The notes below the pieces were generated by a model, which saw only the letters and a list, made by a program, of their open reading frames with translations, made no database searches and was not told the origin of the DNA. From Eukaryota sp. TZLM1-RC (taxonomy: Eukaryota > Protista > Metamonada: BaSk clade): a DNA stretch of 64,000 nucleotides. Shown piece after piece: positions 4,410 to 35,382 of the stretch; within the stretch, counting starts at the first letter, position 1; every line of letters starts with the position of its first letter. Position numbers and translations under genes: made by a program. The stretch lies in contig JAUPSS010000010.1 in the NCBI GenBank assembly GCA_040285825.1, forward strand, positions 680,881 to 744,880, written 5' to 3'.

Positions 4410-6440
4410 GTCTTCTCTTAGCCCACAATATGGTGGTTTAGGTTGGACAAAGGCCTCTATTCTTATTTCATGTGCATTTATCGGTGGATGCAGAGATGCA
4501 ATATTTGAGTTTTCTGAAAGATTTACTGATTGGGAAGGTTTATTAATGACAACGCAAAGTTCTACTATTTTTGCATCAAATGACGAAATTTCAAAAATTG
4601 ATAGAGAACAATGAAGTCGATGTTTTCTTCAATCATTCAATGGTAATATTCATGAAAAGAATTTTTTAATTTAAAACACACTCTTCCTACATTAAAGAAA
4701 CGAATCACTGGAATGTATGAAAATGAGCTTTATAAAAATATATGCAGCTCGGCTGTTTTAAATCAAGATCTTCACTCACTGTTATTGGAGAAAGGTGTTT
4801 GTGAAAATCAGTCATCAGGTTCTTCACTGTTTGTGACGAAAATTTGAAGTGTGTGCTAATAATGAAGCGTTTGTGACAAAAATGAGATTATATTTGAATA
4901 TTCCCATTGATCAATTATTAAAAGAAAAATGTATTTGTTCGAATTCACCTCAACTCACTTTGCGTCATGCTCTGAATTGTTCTAAATTGATAACTTATCG
5001 TTCTTCATTACATGATGCTTTTAGAAACACTGTTTTCAATATGGCAGGAACTGCAAGAATGTCGTGTATTGAAGAGCCTCTGCTGAATAAAAACATTGTC
5101 ATTGAATAATTCTGGTTCTGATGACAGACGTTGATGCCGTTAGGCAGATGAACACACGAAGGAGAGAAATCTAAGTTTATTAATAAAACTGATTCATAAA
5201 CGAGTATCACGTCATCAGTCAAAATACAAAGATACCTACTAATTCAATTTAAGTTCGACAACAACACTACTTTTTCCCATTTTTCTGAGGACAAATACAG
5301 TACTGGCTCAATAGAGGGAAGATATGGGGTTTGTTAAATTCTCCGGTGCATCGTTGGTATGAGAACGTTGGAGACCTACGGGAAGAATTCCTCTGGCAAA
5401 TCGGTTCAGAAAAGCTATGTCTGGCAACTTCAGTCCGGAAGCCCTACTCTTTACCTGGAGGAAACGTCGCAGGTAACAGGACATGCGTTCTCGGACGTCA
5501 CCAATTCGGACATCAAGCTTCAGTTCTGACATAGCCAGACTAAAATCTTCGTACGTGACGAACGATACGACAGATTGTAGATGTCTGAGAAGAACATCGT
5601 CACTGGATGAGACGTCGGATTTCTGGAGAGACAGGACTCTAACAGAAAAGAATCGACCAAGAGTCTTGCTGGAACAAGCTCTTTCTTAGGAGTCACCGAA
5701 GAATAAATCTTTCACTCCTATAGGAACAGAAGAACACTTTCAACTTTCATGGAAGAAAGAGACGTCAGGTTAACAGAGGGAACAGTCATCTGAAATAAGA
5801 AGGGCCAATAATTATTGATGCCGTTAGGCAGATGAACACACGAAGGAGAGAAATCTAAGTTTATTAATAAAACTGATTCATAAACGAGTATCACGTCATC
5901 AGTCAAAATACAAAGATACCTACTAATTCAATTTAAGTTCGACAACAACAACGTGATGTATATTGTGATTGGATTGAGAACTCTGCAGCTTTTGTTGAGT
6001 TTGTCTCCTGTAATATTGCAAATGACACTTTGGTTCAAAAAGAAATCTTAATCCTGTAAGTGCTCTTGAATTTAAAGCTAAATAAAAACATAGAAAATAT
6101 GACAAAGATATCGAAAAAGCTAATGCTGATAGAAAAGAGTACTTGTTTTATTGCTTTCTTATTTTCTATAAGCGGAAGACTATTAGTAGAAGCAGGAACC
6201 TTTCTGAATGATTTCCAAAAAAATGGTTCAAGAAAAAACAATGAAAAAATTTGATATCTTTTTATGGCGCTCTTGAATTCAATTTACCATTATTAATAGA
6301 TTACCCCGGTTTTTCAATCGAATTAGAGAAGCTTTAGCTAGACAGCAAGCCGATCAAGATTTTGTAGAGGAAATTTGGTTCAATTTCGTCCCATTAGTTA
6401 TGATTTTATTTTTTCAAGTTTATTCCAGTTTTCAAAAAAA
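4410..6440 (+). mobile_element. 5'-truncated CRE-clade LINE, family A (CCHC + RLE region), split by an LTR element
   Basis: Near-identical to 15950-17160 (CICSNSPQLTLRHALNCSK). The GSDDR|DVYCDW segment is interrupted at 5131/5951. Confidence 0.88.
5132..5950 (-). mobile_element. Short non-autonomous LTR retroelement (TRIM-like, 819 bp)
   Basis: Two identical 135-bp TG...CA direct repeats (5132-5266, 5816-5950). 4-bp TSD ACGT (5128-5131, 5951-5954). Minus-strand polypurine tract AAAAATGGGAAAAAGTAG abuts the 3' LTR. Broken gag-like ORF inside. Confidence 0.9.
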
Positions 6441-17817: not shown

Positions 17818-18640
17818 TTGATTGTTTTGATTATTCTTACAGCTGGAAAATGTACACGTGTTCAATTTCAAACAAAAGACTCTGGATGGACGGTTTTATT
17901 TAGAAATCCAGTCATCTATTCAATGATTTACGCAAACAACATTAACATTAACATCTTATCAAAATCCAAAGTTGTCACAGAGGTTGACCCTAATGGATAT
18001 AATATCATCAGACTCGGATGTTTTAAGTTTCACCAAAAACAAGAACAATTTCTACACAAAAGGCAAACATTAATATCAAAATTTAGGAAGAAATAGTTTA
18101 CTAAACAAAATTGTTTAGTTTCTCAATTCCGAATAAGAAAGCTCCCAAGTAAAGGTATCTGAAATGCAAAATGGATTTAGTAAAAGCCTATGTGAAACTG
18201 AAACTACTTCACGATTTGTATTTGCTCCCAACACACCGTAATAACCATGTACTTGGAAAACCCAGATTTTTACGCCATAGAAATAGGCAACAGAGTGGAA
18301 AAAACTATTTTATACTAAGTAAGAGTTTGCTGAATTTACACAGTGATAAAGATGGCGTTCCAGGAGACCTTCTAATTGGAATCGGGTATTGGAATCAGAA
18401 GACAAATCGCAAAGGAAAAACTTCGCCTGTAAGTGGTGTAAATTTGAGAAACAATGTAAATCAAACAAAATGGATTCAAAGTATACCTGGGTGGAAGAAG
18501 GCAGAACTAGTGCTAGATGTTCGTCATGTGTGTACGATGATAGAGAAGGTATTACAAAGAGTAAGTTAAAAGTACTTTGAAATATAAATAAACATTTACT
18601 TGATCCAAACACTTTGATTAGAAATGAGAGGGAAATAAAT
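17818..18640 (+). pseudogene. Fanzor1-like RNA-guided nuclease relic (C-terminal half)
   Basis: In order: QFQTKDSGWTVLF, RuvC-I VVTEVDPNGYNII (D at 17986), bridge helix LGKPRFLRHRNRQQS, LLIGIGYW..KGKTSPVSGVNLR, RuvC-II + Zn WVEEGRTSARCSSC (18488-18529). Frameshifted, and no RuvC-III seen. Confidence 0.75.
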
Positions 18641-29955: not shown

Positions 29956-30026
29956 TGCGTCCGCCGGGAATCGAACCCGGGTCACAACGATGGCAACGTC
30001 GTATTCTACCACTAAACCACGAACGC
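29956..30026 (-). tRNA. tRNA-Gly (GCC)
   Basis: GCGTTCG acceptor, anticodon arm CGACG-TTGCCAT-CGTTG, T-loop GGTTCGATTCC, immediately followed by TTTTT terminator. Confidence 0.97.
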
Positions 30027-30036
30027 TATTGCGTTG

Positions 30037-30410
30037 CTGTGTTCGAGGAAAAATTGGGTGGAAAAGGTGGGATTTTGGAAATTTTTTCGAAACAATCCCA
30101 ATTCTATTTGTACCACTGTTTTTCCATACCTGAAACTACAGCATATGTAAGGTAAGCTGGCTAAGGTTTTTGGCGGTACATTTGTTGTTATAATTATGCA
30201 AAACATATAAAGTATAAATTAATTCATTACATTTGTTTAATTACTAGTGGGTGTGTTCCTGATCTCTGACACTTCAATAAAAAGGTGGGTCCATTTGAGT
30301 TCAAATTCACAAGCGGAAGAAACAATATTGAAATACATCACATCCCATGATTATTTGCACCCAATTTATTTATTCCCACTGTTTTTCAACCCACTTTTCC
30401 TCGAACACGG
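30037..30410. mobile_element. MITE-like element (374 bp) with ~40-bp imperfect TIRs
   Basis: CTGTGTTCGAGGAAAAATTGGGTGGAAAAGGTGGGA (from 30037) vs reverse complement of TCCCACTGTTTTTCAACCCACTTTTCCTCGAACACGG (to 30410). Flanks TG / TA. Confidence 0.75.
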
Positions 30411-31480
30411 TAGAAAAATACATTGGGTGAATTTACAACACTTTGGAAAATTCGCCATATTGTATGGGTCCAAAATTTCTTTAAGAACATACTTCCTTTA
30501 CAACAACACGAACCTTCGGGAGCCTCTTCTTTCTTGGTTCAACACCATACCATACATTGGCTGTCACTCTATTTAACTTCTTGGTTGGGTAAGCGCAAAG
30601 GTACATCACCCTTTGTTCTCTCCGAAAAGTGAATTTTAATCAAAAGAATAGAACCTTCATTTTTTCGTTGCAGATTAACAAATCAAAATTTTCTCGAGCA
30701 AGCCTTGACGCATACCTTCAAACAACATAGACTCAAATCTAACGCTAGTTTGAAGCCTGCTTTTGTTTTCTTTTTCCACATCGGTCGTCAACCATTTTAT
30801 CTAAACACACAACACAAATAATTTTGGAAAACCCATATTTATTTTTCAGAACAAAAGTCAATGACTACACCATGTCGTCTAATGGTGATAGTGTACGTTT
30901 AACTTTCACACCCCACCCAAAAGCAACACAAGTGAGATTGTCTGGAGAAGCCTTGGGTGATGAGAGACCCAGAGGGGTATTTGGTTACTATGAAACCACT
31001 CGGAATAGAAAACGAACCCTGTAAGCCAAAATTAAAGGGTCACGACCTCTCCAGAAACCAAAAACTATTGAGTTGCAGGCCTTTGATGATGAAACGGAAA
31101 CATTGTTCTAAGCCATCAATCCCAACGACTTTAATCTATGTAATTCCAGCATTGGAACACGTTCAAGGCCGACCGTGTCCAATATCTTTTTGGAACCAAA
31201 CCAACGAAAAATCAATCACTCCGCTTCACTAACCCACTCATCAATAGATGTTTGTGACGTGCAGAAATTGAACCATTATCTGCTTGAAGCATCAACTACC
31301 GGTGACTACAGTGACCATGAAGGTAATAACATAAGACGATTTTTGCAAAACAGCAATTATATCTGAATGTTCGAAAAGCATTGAGAAAAAACACACTTGC
31401 CTTCTTTATAAGAAAACAGAAGAGATTAACCGCAATTATCAACAAAGTGAAAAAATTTGCAGACGTACATTCAGATAAAT
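30411..31480 (+). pseudogene. Fanzor1-like relic, truncated after the bridge helix (tandem paralog of 31750-33629)
   Basis: FKQHRLKSNASLKPAFV, QIILENPYLFF, DYTMSSNGDSVRLTF (30863-30907), LF*AINPNDFNL (31103-31138), RKALRKNTLAFFIRKQKRLTAIINKVKK (from 31372). All collinear with the downstream copy. The start coordinate is approximate. Confidence 0.75.
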
Positions 31481-31749: not shown

Positions 31750-33629
31750 ACGCCCACTACACTAAAGACTACGACAGTGGATGCATCTGTTAATAATTTC
31801 TCCTTTCCTGTAATCCAGTCGTCACTGGAGAGTCAGCTTATCAATAAGCAACGTATTGCAGTATGTGCTACCAGGCTGGCTCAACTGTTTACCCTGCAGC
31901 GCCCGTAACCTGAGCATTTGGCTCACACAGCAGCAGTTCTCGGTGCCTCAGAACCGACGTCCCTTCGTTAGGGAGGGTGTTGTTGACGACACTCTCTTTA
32001 TTCTGTCGTCACGCCCGAGCTGGCCTTTTCCACCACCGTGTTCATCAAGCCGCCGTACTGGAGGCCCAGAGGTTCACCCATAGCTACTATTCTTCTTTTG
32101 TTTCTGCGACTGCCCGTCGCTTTGCGGAAGCCCACTGCCGTCTTTTGACAGAGGGACCGGTATGCTGGAAACAAAACTTTTTTTTGCAACGTGCCCCCGT
32201 TGCTTTGGGTGTCTAGCACCCAAAACATATGCCTCCTGTGTCTTGCCCCGAACAACATTCTCACCTAGAGTTGCCGCCTTTGCCAACCACTGGCATGTGT
32301 TTATCCGCGCCAGATGGGGAGCTCTACTGGACATCAGTGGTGATGTCCCCGACAATGATCACCAGCGCCCTTTGAGCGTATATTTTTAGCACCTGTTATG
32401 GATCTATCCAATGAGGTTGCTGCTTTTGTCCTCCACTGTCGCTTGACTATACTGTCATTCCTGTAAAGTCTCGCCCGACAGTTTGAGAAGACATGCCTTG
32501 TCTCCCCTCGCGAGTTATGTCACATGCTCTGTGAACGTAAACAAACAAACCCCCACGCCTCTTCTTCTAAAAACCATGGCGGTCAGCTCCTGGTGTCCCC
32601 TTACCGCTACTTTGGTCTTTCTTGGGACAGATACCCAGAGTACTCTGTAGCCACTGATGGTGTGAGCTTGCCTTTTGCTTTTTCACTCACCGGCTTTTTC
32701 AAGCAAACTCATAAAAGGCGCACCAAAACAGAGATGAAGGAAGCTCAAGCTGCAGATAAAGTGCAAGACTTCCACTGCGCTCAAATCAAGCGTTCCAAGA
32801 CAATGTAGCAGAAAGTCACCAGCCCCAGAAGACCAGAGATGATTCAAAGTCAGCAACAAAGGCCCCACCAGAATGCCAACTCTTTCTTTGTGGCCATGGA
32901 CCCCAACCGCAGTAATTTAGTGGGTTGAACAGCTGGTCAAACTTGTGGACCACTCAGATCAGGCATTGTCCTATCACCGAAGCCTCGCTCCATGACAACT
33001 ACCCCTTCGTTGAGCCGATTGAGTCCAAATTGTTATTCCGTTCAGGTCTATTATCAGCATCTGATTACAATGTCAACAAAGTTGGTCGATGTTACTCAAC
33101 CTACTGAAATGGAACAGTGGCTTTTAGTGGATCCTTAAAGAGACAACACTGAAAGACAAAGCTTTCTGGACCACCATCTACATCAAGGAGAAAGAAAAGC
33201 AATATCCCGTAATCACTTCGACTTTTTCATCCGTTGCCAAAAGAGATTCAGCCACTTTGTCCAGAAAATCAAAAACATGGCTAAAAATCGTGAAGTGTTT
33301 ATTTGGTTTGAAAAAGGAGGTGATGGACAATCCCGTCAAAGAGTGAAAACGCCAAGAAAGTGTTTTCTGAAGTATCTCAAGGCTGGATTTCCAACTGTGA
33401 AGGATGGAGATGAATACTATACATCTGCCAAAATGAACAAATGCAAAGTTTTCCATGATGACCTTTACTTCATAGAGAATGAAGAAAAGAAAAGTCAAAA
33501 GTCTATTTTGCATGTTCAGAATGTGGGATGGTTTGGTCAAGAGATATATCTGCATCCAGAAACCAGTGAAAAATTACAGTAAGCGAGTACTCTTTGAACA
33601 CTAGACCTCCAGCTTTTGGAAAATCTTGA
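31750..33629 (+). pseudogene. Near full-length Fanzor1 (eukaryotic TnpB-like RNA-guided RuvC nuclease), multiply disrupted
   Basis: HALSPLASYV, EYSVATDGVSL, RuvC-I FFVAMDPNRSNLV (32884-32922), FDFFIRCQKRFSHFVQKIK, VFIWFEKGG..KTPRK, RuvC-II GDEYYTSAK..KC (E 33412), CSECGMVWSRDISASRN (33513-33563), RPPAF, stop 33627-33629. About 626 codons. Confidence 0.88.
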
Positions 33630-33730
33630 TAAGAGTCTTCAAATCCAACGTATTTTGATCTAAGCCAATCATCTCCAAATGGTTAAGTTTAGACATGTGG
33701 ATGTGGTTGAAGTGTTGGAAATTTATATTT
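33608..33730 (+). ncRNA. Candidate omegaRNA scaffold (and downstream guide) of the Fanzor
   Basis: Small hairpin TCCA-GCTTT-TGGA (33608-33620), then nested stems CTTCAA/TTGAAG, TCCA/TGGA, TCTAAGC/GTTTAGA, AATCAT/ATGGTT (33637-33712) directly after the stop codon. Confidence 0.5.
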
Positions 33731-33739
33731 CAGATAAAC

Positions 33740-34330
33740 AAATAAGTTTTATTACTTGAACAGTCACATTTTACAACTCAACAACAAACCTTAACTAATA
33801 CTTTTTCTACTACGAACCCCATCCACTAAATGATGGGAGATATTCGCTATTCACTTTTATAGGAACTCGATTGTTATAAAACTCCGTAATATTATTCAAA
33901 ATGGAGTTAATATAATGAGGAAGAGCTTTAAATAACGAAAATACGATTCTGTTCTTCCAAATCAGAAAATCAAATGTGCGACCACTTTCTTTGAGAAGTT
34001 TTCCTAAATCATCTAAAAAAGGAAGACCTTCACTTCCAATGGTACCAAAAACTGATATAGAAATTGGAACAAATCTGATGTTTCTACCTCTTGTTCGATT
34101 GAGACGTTGAAGAAGAACTTCGTATTTTTATTTCTTGGAATGTTCTGCAACTTTAAGTAAATGGTGAATATCAGAATTAAAACTCATTTTCCATGGAAAA
34201 ATGGTGGTACAATCGATTATTAGTTCGGTTCCATCATAGCAAGCACATCGAATGTCACCTCGTTTTTGGCTCAAACTGAAATTTAATTCATCAAACAGTG
34301 GTTCAAAGCAGACTGGGTGATGAAGAATAA
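33740..34330 (-). mobile_element. CRE-clade LINE 3' fragment (RLE), family G
   Basis: CFEPLF..KRGDIRCACYDGTELIIDC..RFVPISISVFGTIG..LIWKNRIVFSLFK on the minus strand. AATAAA near 33750. Confidence 0.75.
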
Positions 34331-34398
34331 AGAATCAGATACAGAATGCATTTCCAGTGAAAACCACCTGACAGAGAGGAATTCCCACACCTACAAAC

Positions 34399-35382
34399 AT
34401 GCCTACCCAAGACAATGACACCTACTATTATGACTCATATGGTACCTATCATATCCATGAAGAAATGCTTTCAGACCGCATCCGTACAAAGGCCTACATG
34501 AACTGGATTTACCGAAACAAAGACCTCTTGAAGGACAAGGTTGTGCTCGACGTTGGCTGTGGTACCTCCATACTGTCCCTTTTCTGTGCCAAGGCTGGTG
34601 CCAGGAAAGTTTACGCTGTTGACGCCAGTGCAATAGTCCACACTGCTCGCAAGATTGTTGAAATAAACAATCTTTCAGACGTTGTTGAGGTCATTGAAGG
34701 CAAAATAGAAGAAATTGAACTACCAGAAAAGGTAGACATAATCATTAGTGAATGGATGGGCTACTTTTTGTATTACGAATCTATGCTCAATTCCGTCCTC
34801 GTAGCCCGTGACCGCTTCCTCAAAGAAGATGGTATAATGGCTCCTAATAAGACTGTAATCAAAATTGCTGGTATTGAAGATGCTGAATTCAAGGAAGATA
34901 AACTTAACTTTTGGAAGAATGTCTATGGTTTTGATATGGGCTTCCTTTCTGAAAGCTTTTTAAATGAACCTCTTGTAGATTATGCTCCTGCTGAAGCTTT
35001 GGTTACTGACTTTGCAGTGGTAGATGAATGTGATATAGACACTGTTGTCAATGGTGAATGTGGCGCTTATAAGAGTAAATTTAAACTCAACGTTACCAGG
35101 GACGATGTTCTCCACGCTCTTGTTGCACATTTTGATGTAGGTTTCACCCATGGCCATTCTTTATGGTTTAGCACCTCCCCTGAATCCCCCAATACTCATT
35201 GGAAACAAACAGTTCTTTACCTTAAAGATGATATTGTGGTTTATGAAGGTGATGTTGTTGAAGGTGAGATTGAGGTATTACCAAATTCTTTAAATCCAAG
35301 AGAGCTTGACATTAAATTGACTTATAAATATAGCGGAAAGGGGAGTGTTGTGGAAAATCACCAGTTTTTCAGACTTCAGTAG
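34399..35382 (+). CDS. PRMT1: Protein arginine N-methyltransferase (PRMT1/Hmt1-like)
   Basis: YYYDSY..IHEEML, VLDVGCG, SEWMGYFL.YESML double-E loop, THWKQT. Confidence 0.93.
   Translation: MPTQDNDTYYYDSYGTYHIHEEMLSDRIRTKAYMNWIYRNKDLLKDKVVLDVGCGTSILSLFCAKAGARKVYAVDASAIVHTARKIVEINNLSDVVEVIEGKIEEIELPEKVDIIISEWMGYFLYYESMLNSVLVARDRFLKEDGIMAPNKTVIKIAGIEDAEFKEDKLNFWKNVYGFDMGFLSESFLNEPLVDYAPAEALVTDFAVVDECDIDTVVNGECGAYKSKFKLNVTRDDVLHALVAHFDVGFTHGHSLWFSTSPESPNTHWKQTVLYLKDDIVVYEGDVVEGEIEVLPNSLNPRELDIKLTYKYSGKGSVVENHQFFRLQ

Follow-up and report, generated by a model that had tools for sequence, protein, structure and literature searches.

The remains of a Fanzor1-like nuclease gene in the metamonad strain TZLM1-RC and its relatives in Skoliomonas

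The stretch at 31750-33629 (+ strand) of a 64,000-nucleotide window from strain TZLM1-RC, which we take to be Skoliomonas litria (Metamonada), very probably represents a defunct mobile element copy with a single gene, which coded for a Fanzor1-type nuclease from the eukaryotic branch of the TnpB/Cas12 superfamily. The window is the whole stretch of DNA analysed here, positions 680,881 to 744,880 of contig JAUPSS010000010.1. Fanzors are eukaryotic RNA-guided nucleases under development as compact genome editors. The pseudogene body of about 600 codons, read across frames, was delimited by ordered tblastn matches and frameshift-aware alignments to the related proteins P0008, P0009 and P0037, and by tblastn to P0004. 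It is one among many decaying copies in the TZLM1-RC genome and the most complete of its subfamily among the copies examined. By fold and architecture the family is classified as Fanzor1-like, with a deviating motif set, and its fold and motifs suggest a role as an RNA-guided nuclease.

The earlier note on this DNA, made from the letters alone, had stitched an ordered set of motifs across stops and indels into a hidden, nearly full-length Fanzor1 gene. Three-frame translation of 31750-33650 recovers every motif at its place and in order: HALSPLASYV is read in the +1 frame, YSVATDGVSL, FFVAMDPNRSNL, FDFFIRCQKRF, FIWFEKGG..TPRK and DEYYTSAK..KC are all in the frame of 31750, and CSECGMVWSRDISASRN and RPPAF are read in the +2 frame. 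A frameshift-aware protein-to-DNA alignment gave collinear and nearly full-length matches to three intact proteins of 592-604 aa. Positions 31768-33626 are collinear with residues 2-601 of the intact, 604 amino acid (aa) P0008, 238 of the 569 aligned codons (42%) being identical, and P0009 and P0037 align likewise along the region. tblastn of the relatives against the window yielded ordered matches from 31762 to 33617 with several frame switches. Since tblastn and the frameshift-aware alignment are both collinear on an intact 604-aa protein, the motif order is not due to chance.

Open pieces of the broken gene were searched one by one, cross-frame reading being confined to the alignment script. 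The longest (33139-33579, 147 aa) matched 12 relatives among 1.84 billion representative proteins, with E values from 1.7e-32 to 2.7e-08, and these relatives include full-length proteins of 539-604 aa. As the earlier note had said, the region is a GC-richer island (46.3% in the element versus 35.6% across the window, and about 51% in the 5' half of the element). A chance assembly of short motifs in such an island, which would never have been a nuclease gene, could draw on the fact that short zinc-finger-like patterns are common and that a 28-aa piece of the window gives spurious summed matches to C2H2 fingers; however, an E value of 1.7e-32 for the single 147-aa piece, the 42% identity over the aligned codons and the existence of six paralogous DNA copies at 79-89% identity make this so improbable as to be negligible.

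The assignment to Fanzor1 is supported by structure comparison, in which the full-length modelled fold of P0008 lies closer to solved Fanzor1 structures than to Fanzor2, TnpB or Cas12. An AlphaFold model of P0008 was built from a 16-row family alignment, with a mean predicted local distance difference test value (pLDDT) of 69 and a predicted template modelling score (pTM) of 0.38. Foldseek against the PDB placed six Fanzor1 entries on top, SpuFz with E 1.5e-9 to 4.2e-8 (probability 1.00; TM 0.41-0.44 over about 680 columns), and PpFz with 8.9e-8, followed by GtFz with 9.2e-4; Cas12f, Cas12g, ISDra2 TnpB (E 0.036) and the mimivirus Fanzor2 ApmFz2 (E 0.11) ranked below them. VIA-align gave Z 11.2-11.8 for SpuFz and PpFz with 443-448 residues aligned, the longest alignments in the list, and 208 residues for TnpB. 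SpuFz was also first (E 3.8e-4, Foldseek) with an earlier model made from four sequences (pLDDT 48). Among the viral models of BFVD the best matches were Fanzor-like proteins of 570-800 aa from giant and insect viruses, at E 1.5e-12 upward, with mimivirus TnpB-like proteins near 1e-3, and the nearest ESM Atlas clusters carry DUF8286 and PF07282 (features 0.98, shape TM 0.48-0.51). The Foldseek comparison that the earlier note had called for thus came out with SpuFz at the top (E 1.5e-9), as obtained with the model of an intact relative, and together with the collinearity on residues 2-601 of P0008 it bears out a nearly full-length Fanzor1 gene.

Sequence profiles, taken by themselves, would place the Skoliomonas family at TnpB level only. 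PF07282 (Cas12f1-like TNB) scored above its gathering cut-off of 26.3 bits for P0009, P0012 and P0001 (28.1, 30.7 and 30.4 bits among the three), the window's own 28-aa RuvC-III piece matched it at E 2.7e-4, and the best E value for NCBIfam guided_TnpB was 2.6e-6. P0008 had no Pfam match other than PF07282 at E <=0.1, which takes in DUF8286 if the local Pfam copy holds it. When the 28-aa piece was compared with the PDB, the summed C2H2 zinc-finger matches were rejected as spurious, and weak Cas12m and Cas12f rows were also returned.

Fanzors are defined by DPG at RuvC-I and a Glu six residues ahead of the first CxxC, and a TDG motif in the WED domain is a hallmark of Fanzor1 (PMC10711439). The canonical RuvC-II Glu is lost in Fanzors (PMC10530073), and the zinc finger is closely preceded by an alternative Glu (PMC10711439, PMC10530073). 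All signature motifs of the window copy lie on the + strand. T-D-G of the WED domain is at 32653-32661, where YSVATDGVSL aligns with YSIKTDGVSI of P0008. RuvC-I, D-P-N, is at 32899-32907 and aligns with the family-invariant AIDPNH. The strand that carries the classical TnpB RuvC-II Glu is represented by W-F-E-K-G-G at 33304-33321, where the family has WFG.GG, the G being changed to E in the window copy. The alternative RuvC-II Glu lies in D-E-Y-Y-T-S-A-K, followed by K-C (33409-33447), where the family has C-C. The second zinc knuckle, C-S-E-C, and RuvC-III, W-S-R-D-I-S-A-S-R-N, occupy 33513-33560, within the 28-aa PF07282 match and 79% identical to P0001. The three catalytic codons are retained, as had been claimed: GAC at 32899-32901, GAA at 33412-33414 and GAT at 33543-33545. 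Their counterparts D367, E518 and D564 (P0008 numbering) are invariant in the intact family members and would form the triad in the order RuvC-I, RuvC-II, RuvC-III.

In the family the canonical RuvC-II site is a Gly (W-F-G-x-G-G) and a Glu stands 34-36 residues further on in G-D-E-x-x-T-S, which is the Fanzor arrangement. TDG is present in P0008 and the window copy, while other subfamilies have SDG, TNG or SNG. RuvC-I is DPN, or DLG in one divergent member, and the first knuckle is CC (CH in P0037) at +9/+10, not CxxC at +7/+10, with a conserved His four residues after the CC in most members. The fit to the Fanzor motif set that had been asserted for the window copy holds for the relocated RuvC-II Glu, RuvC-III and TDG, but fails at RuvC-I, where DPN stands for DPG, and at the first knuckle, where the family has CC for CxxC. 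D-P-N is not exotic, since the metal ligands of SpuFz1 include D383 and N385 (PMC10432273), with the same Asp-to-Asn spacing.

These deviations could also be read as the mark of a recent independent capture of a bacterial TnpB (or of a Fanzor2/IS607-type gene) by the bacteria-feeding skoliomonads. Besides the absence of DPG and the DLG of one paralogue, as found in TnpBs, the circumstance that only TnpB-level sequence models match and that no terminal inverted repeats were seen would agree with such an origin. Nevertheless, the proteins are about 600 aa in length, their long N-terminal half is helical and about 445 residues align to Fanzor1 structures, whereas ISDra2 TnpB aligns over 208 residues only and ApmFz2 reaches only E 0.11; Glu is at the relocated, Fanzor-type position with Gly at the canonical site, T-D-G is present, and the 2.5-kb unit described below contains no serine-recombinase gene. 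The distribution of relatives also speaks against capture. All relatives found in protein collections come from three Skoliomonas strains, where they are named "hypothetical protein"; a word-indexed search of proteins, for which P0008 and the alignment served as queries, returned proteins of strain TZLM3-RCL only; and no relative was found in IMG/VR viral contigs (pattern and tblastn) or in a scan of metagenome contigs. We consider the capture of a TnpB improbable, and the Fanzor1 assignment is retained.

The window copy is dead: its start is lost, its frame is interrupted by five stops and shifted at least seven times, and its 3' tail is split. An ACG (31750-31752) takes the place of the start codon, as the earlier note had read it, opposite Met1 of P0004, and from the upstream stop (31741) to 31905 the frame contains no ATG. 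The frameshift-aware alignment shows an in-frame TAA at 31906-31908 with a frameshift directly after it. In the N-terminal REC-like half (31940-32568) at least five further frameshifts follow, near 31940-31990, 32179-32197, 32355-32370, 32446-32464 and 32553-32568, which three reference alignments place alike within a few tens of bases. The same alignment gives an in-frame TAG at 32806-32808 and, together with tblastn, an in-frame TGA at 32926-32928, at a conserved W/Y position (CG[WY]T). tblastn shows an in-frame TAA at 33136-33138, where the close paralogues P0002 and P0003 have Q (NPQRDNTE). A frameshift at 33488-33491, between RuvC-II and the zinc ribbon, was seen by frameshift-aware alignment and as a change of tblastn frame, and an in-frame TGA at 33567-33569, at a conserved W (NQWKIA), was given by both methods. 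The frameshift count of at least seven is made up of the one near 31906, the five in 31940-32568 and the one at 33488-33491. The natural stop codon (33627-33629) coincides with that of six paralogous copies.

It is conceivable that the gene is alive and that its stops and frameshifts reflect an unusual code (TGA as Trp, TAA/TAG as Gln), short introns or long-read assembly errors. TGA indeed occurs twice at a W of the relatives and TAA once at a Q, the assembly is nanopore-based and the annotators bridged a frameshift in P0004 with an 'intron'. However, the assembly was polished with Illumina reads (PMC11316075, in which the Skoliomonas genomes are described), the adjacent host genes are long uninterrupted open reading frames (ORFs) in the standard code, and the frame changes, at least seven in number, lie within conserved blocks of the alignment, with no intron-sized gaps; another code or introns therefore cannot explain the lesions. 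The start codon is lost as well, and a 593-bp repeat splits the 3' tail. Stops at W and Q codons are what decay is expected to produce, because transitions convert such codons to stops (W to TGA, Q to TAA). A living gene is accordingly highly improbable, and we regard the copy as a pseudogene.

Copy-specific substitutions comprise 63% transitions with an excess of GC-to-AT changes, an ordinary transition and AT bias with no pattern like that of repeat-induced point mutation. The copy had been described as recently decayed; the decay is plain, but 'recently' holds only in relative terms, DNA identity to the nearest paralogues being 79-91%. Along 31855-33741 the identity to the paralogue loci L002 and L003 is about 75-80% in the 5' half and increases to about 87-93% towards the 3' end, while GC declines from about 51% to about 42%. 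This gradient might stem from composition-dependent decay or from gene conversion of 3' ends.

Intact copies elsewhere, which the earlier note had anticipated, exist as uninterrupted ORFs in the same genome and in sister genomes. Four TZLM3-RCL copies on different contigs are single uninterrupted ORFs of 604-605 aa, which share 2.49 kb at 98-99% DNA identity between unrelated flanks, and the 90% clusters of TZLM3-RCL have 14, 41 and 10 members. Dispersed copies that are so nearly identical in unrelated flanks imply recent spread, and these sequence comparisons point to a family that was recently mobile in TZLM3-RCL. In TZLM1-RC, six further copies of the window subfamily are all decayed and 5'-truncated at differing points, with 79-89% DNA identity. 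P0004 (L011:3001-4867) is a nearly intact copy of another subfamily in the same genome, the 548-aa model of which bridges one frameshift with a 220-nt 'intron' by which the WED S-N-G region is lost; residues 1-109 of P0004 recur, 100% identical, in an inverted fragment at L011:1-328. An open ORF of 586 codons (L006:76-1836), from a divergent subfamily, is present in the same genome too, with D-L-G at RuvC-I, A-V-G-S-A at the canonical RuvC-II site and the right-end motif about 300 nt past its stop. The arginine methyltransferase gene next to the window copy and the paralogue loci are both within assembly GCA_040285825.1.

The gene extent of 31750-33629 that had been given ends at the natural stop, but the element goes on beyond it. 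The first part of its 3' non-coding tail (33630-33741, + strand) is about 91% identical among seven copies, with homology that ends sharply and predicted hairpins, and is a candidate omegaRNA scaffold. At 91% versus 89%, the tail has no clear edge in conservation over the coding part next to it, and we dropped the argument from conservation. A 593-bp dispersed repeat follows (33742-34334), a secondary insertion, since other copies are contiguous across the insertion point. The insert sits between the two units of a 12-bp imperfect direct repeat (33730-33741 and 34335-34346, 10 of 12 positions identical), pieces of it recur at L011:1471-1722 and L002:6329-6401, and no inverted repeats were found. 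The last 40 bases of the element (34335-34374, + strand) carry the conserved motif ATGCAT-N7-GAAAACCAC...ACAG and are 88-97% identical to four other right ends, after which the flanks diverge. The window-subfamily copies have a common 3' tail in which homology stops at the same base after ...ATGCATTTCCAGTGAAAACCACAGACAG, with unrelated flanks beyond, and the right ends of P0008-type TZLM3-RCL copies read ...CCACAGTA. The motif, ATGCAT-N7-9-(T)GAAA-NN-CACAG, is conserved in three subfamilies: that of the window copy, that of TZLM3-RCL and that of the divergent S. litria paralogue.

Pairing of the 3' half of the motif with a GUG(G/A)(G/A)UU further upstream is predicted for each subfamily; two of them have CC/GG pairs where the third has UU/AA. 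This swap across three lineages is weak compensatory evidence for the hairpin. In an intact TZLM3 copy, the final 100 nt up to the right end are predicted to fold with z -7.8. We propose that the right-end region is likely an omegaRNA scaffold and that the downstream flank would serve as the guide, by analogy with TnpB and Fanzor.

Aligning the flanks, as had been suggested, resolved a sharp right end, but gave neither terminal inverted repeats nor a uniform target duplication. The TZLM3 copies have a defined left end. One TZLM3-RCL locus (L010) carries an intact 2.49-kb copy between perfect 13-bp direct repeats (2385-2397 and 4888-4900), and another (L007) a copy plus a 749-bp module flanked by an 11-bp repeat (1633-1643 and 4896-4906), while the copies of L008 and L009 show no clear target duplication. 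In the L009 copy the 749-bp module is seen to hold two 25-nt inverted repeats with an end-to-end distance of about 655 bp. The 2.5-kb TZLM3 unit contains no second ORF of >=100 aa and no serine-recombinase gene.

Several results weigh against reading the copy as a mobile element with a Fanzor1-type gene. Neither terminal inverted repeats nor a transposase gene was found, and only some copies have a target duplication. None of the seven full-length members matches the published pattern DPG-x(120,160)-E-x6-CxxC-x(12,18)-CxxC-x(4,8)-D, because they have DPN (or DLG) at RuvC-I and CC or CH for the first CxxC; the D-to-E spacing of 143-161 and CxxC-x6-D are the parts that do fit. Family HMMER profiles (A1, A3) reach no solved Fanzor in the PDB, where only the RuvC-III motif was aligned (LaTranC, E 0.004-0.24), and phmmer with the 147-aa piece found no match there. 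The structural model is of moderate quality, with middling confidence (pTM 0.38), and was built for a 42%-identical relative and not for the window's broken gene. RNAalifold on seven window-subfamily 3' ends returned 0 compensatory pairs, since copies within the subfamily are too similar to covary; across subfamilies no consensus structure emerged, MAFFT having misaligned the arms. Since the members fail the published pattern and are linked by profiles to no solved Fanzor, pattern-based surveys would probably miss them.

From homology we propose how a working copy would act. Its protein of about 600 aa would bind a guide RNA transcribed from the 3' end of the element, consisting of the tail of the reading frame, 80-300 nt of non-coding sequence with the conserved right-end hairpin at its end, and then flanking DNA as the guide. 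Matching double-stranded DNA would be cut by one RuvC site composed of the Asp of DPN, the relocated Glu of GDE.xTS and the Asp of SRDISA. The window copy is incapable of this, with its start lost, its frame broken and the terminal hairpin of the presumed scaffold split by the 593-bp repeat.

Past the right end of the window copy lies an intact arginine methyltransferase host gene (34399-35382, + strand; Pfam PRMT_C E 1e-43), the ATG of which is 24 bp from the element. In 12 of the 12 copies examined (the window and loci L002-L010) the next annotated gene past the right end is on the same strand, and in 9 of these 12 its ATG follows at a distance of 10-76 bp. Such closeness of right ends to same-strand genes that begin after them could bear on the target choice of such elements. 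We tentatively propose, at slightly less than even chances, that the window copy marks a Fanzor1 clade that is confined to metamonads (skoliomonads) and has not been described before. The clade would still move in at least one strain, would combine a variant zinc ribbon (CC...H and CxxC) and a conserved right-end hairpin (ATGCAT...GAAA-NN-CACAG) with the absence of inverted repeats, and would prefer sites 10-76 bp ahead of the start codons of host genes, in the orientation of the gene. If so, the guide part of the RNA would match host 5' leaders.

The suspicion that the host is a protist lineage in which the family may be undescribed agrees with its metamonad origin and with the literature search, which found no paper pairing Fanzor with Metamonada (the sole 'Fanzor' and 'Trichomonas' paper is an AlphaFold 3 review) and none describing intact Skoliomonas family copies. 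Metamonads are unmentioned in three large Fanzor surveys (PMC10711439, PMC10530073, PMC10432273). As far as the literature searched shows, the Skoliomonas family extends the host range of Fanzor1 to Metamonada. The window copy is useless in itself, yet it points to natural enzymes of 539-605 aa with open frames (P0008, P0009, P0037, P0012 and the L006:76-1836 ORF) from haloalkaliphilic anaerobic flagellates, which are annotated as hypothetical only. The family is also a test of how much variation is tolerated in the RuvC-I and zinc-ribbon signatures. The search for intact paralogs proposed in the earlier note had its yield in the 586-codon ORF of the same genome and the 604-605-aa copies of TZLM3-RCL.

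Directly upstream of the window copy, an older 3'-truncated copy of another subfamily (30137-31470, + strand) was detected by tblastn and frameshift-aware alignment to P0009 and P0004, with about 33% identity. It has A-I-N-P-N at RuvC-I and does not extend to RuvC-II. The minus strand carries a tRNA-Gly gene at 29956-30026. At 17818-18569, two ORFs with E-V-D-P-N-G-Y-N and L-L-I-G-I-G-Y-W-N have the RuvC-I/RuvC-II look of yet another relic; the region had no tblastn match to five family queries at E 1e-4.

Among known systems, the TnpBs of IS200/IS605 and IS607 elements (ISDra2, PDB code: 8H1J/8EXA) and Fanzor2 (ApmFz2, PDB code: 9B0L) resemble the Skoliomonas family in the RuvC fold, in the zinc ribbon C-x-x-C ... 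R-D-x-N-A-A-x-N (PF07282, guided_TnpB) and in a guide RNA presumed to come from the right end. They are, however, much shorter (about 400-470 aa, of which about 200-300 residues align), most TnpBs have the canonical RuvC-II Glu, and Fanzor2 travels with an IS607 serine recombinase, whereas none is present in the 2.5-kb Skoliomonas unit. The viral Fanzor-like 'transposases' of Klosneuvirinae, Tetraselmis virus, a nudivirus and a granulovirus (DUF8286 and PF07282) give the strongest fold matches (1.5e-12 to 1e-8), but the Skoliomonas host is a cellular metamonad. From the solved Fanzor1 proteins, SpuFz1 of Spizellomyces punctatus (PDB code: 8GKH, 9CEU-9CEZ), PpFz and GtFz1, the family differs in an identity of only 13-14% in structural alignments, with no link by HMMER, in a first knuckle of C-C (with a His four residues on) instead of CxxC, in elements that showed neither terminal inverted repeats nor an associated transposase, and in right ends that lie 10-76 bp before same-strand host genes in 9 of 12 copies examined. 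It shares with them, nevertheless, a length of about 600 aa and, in this order, an N-terminal half that is helical and REC-like, a WED domain bearing T-D-G, RuvC-I, the relocated Glu in E-x-x-T-S, the zinc ribbon and RuvC-III with R-D-x-x-A-x-x-N, and the spacing of D383 and N385 in SpuFz1 equals that of its D-P-N.

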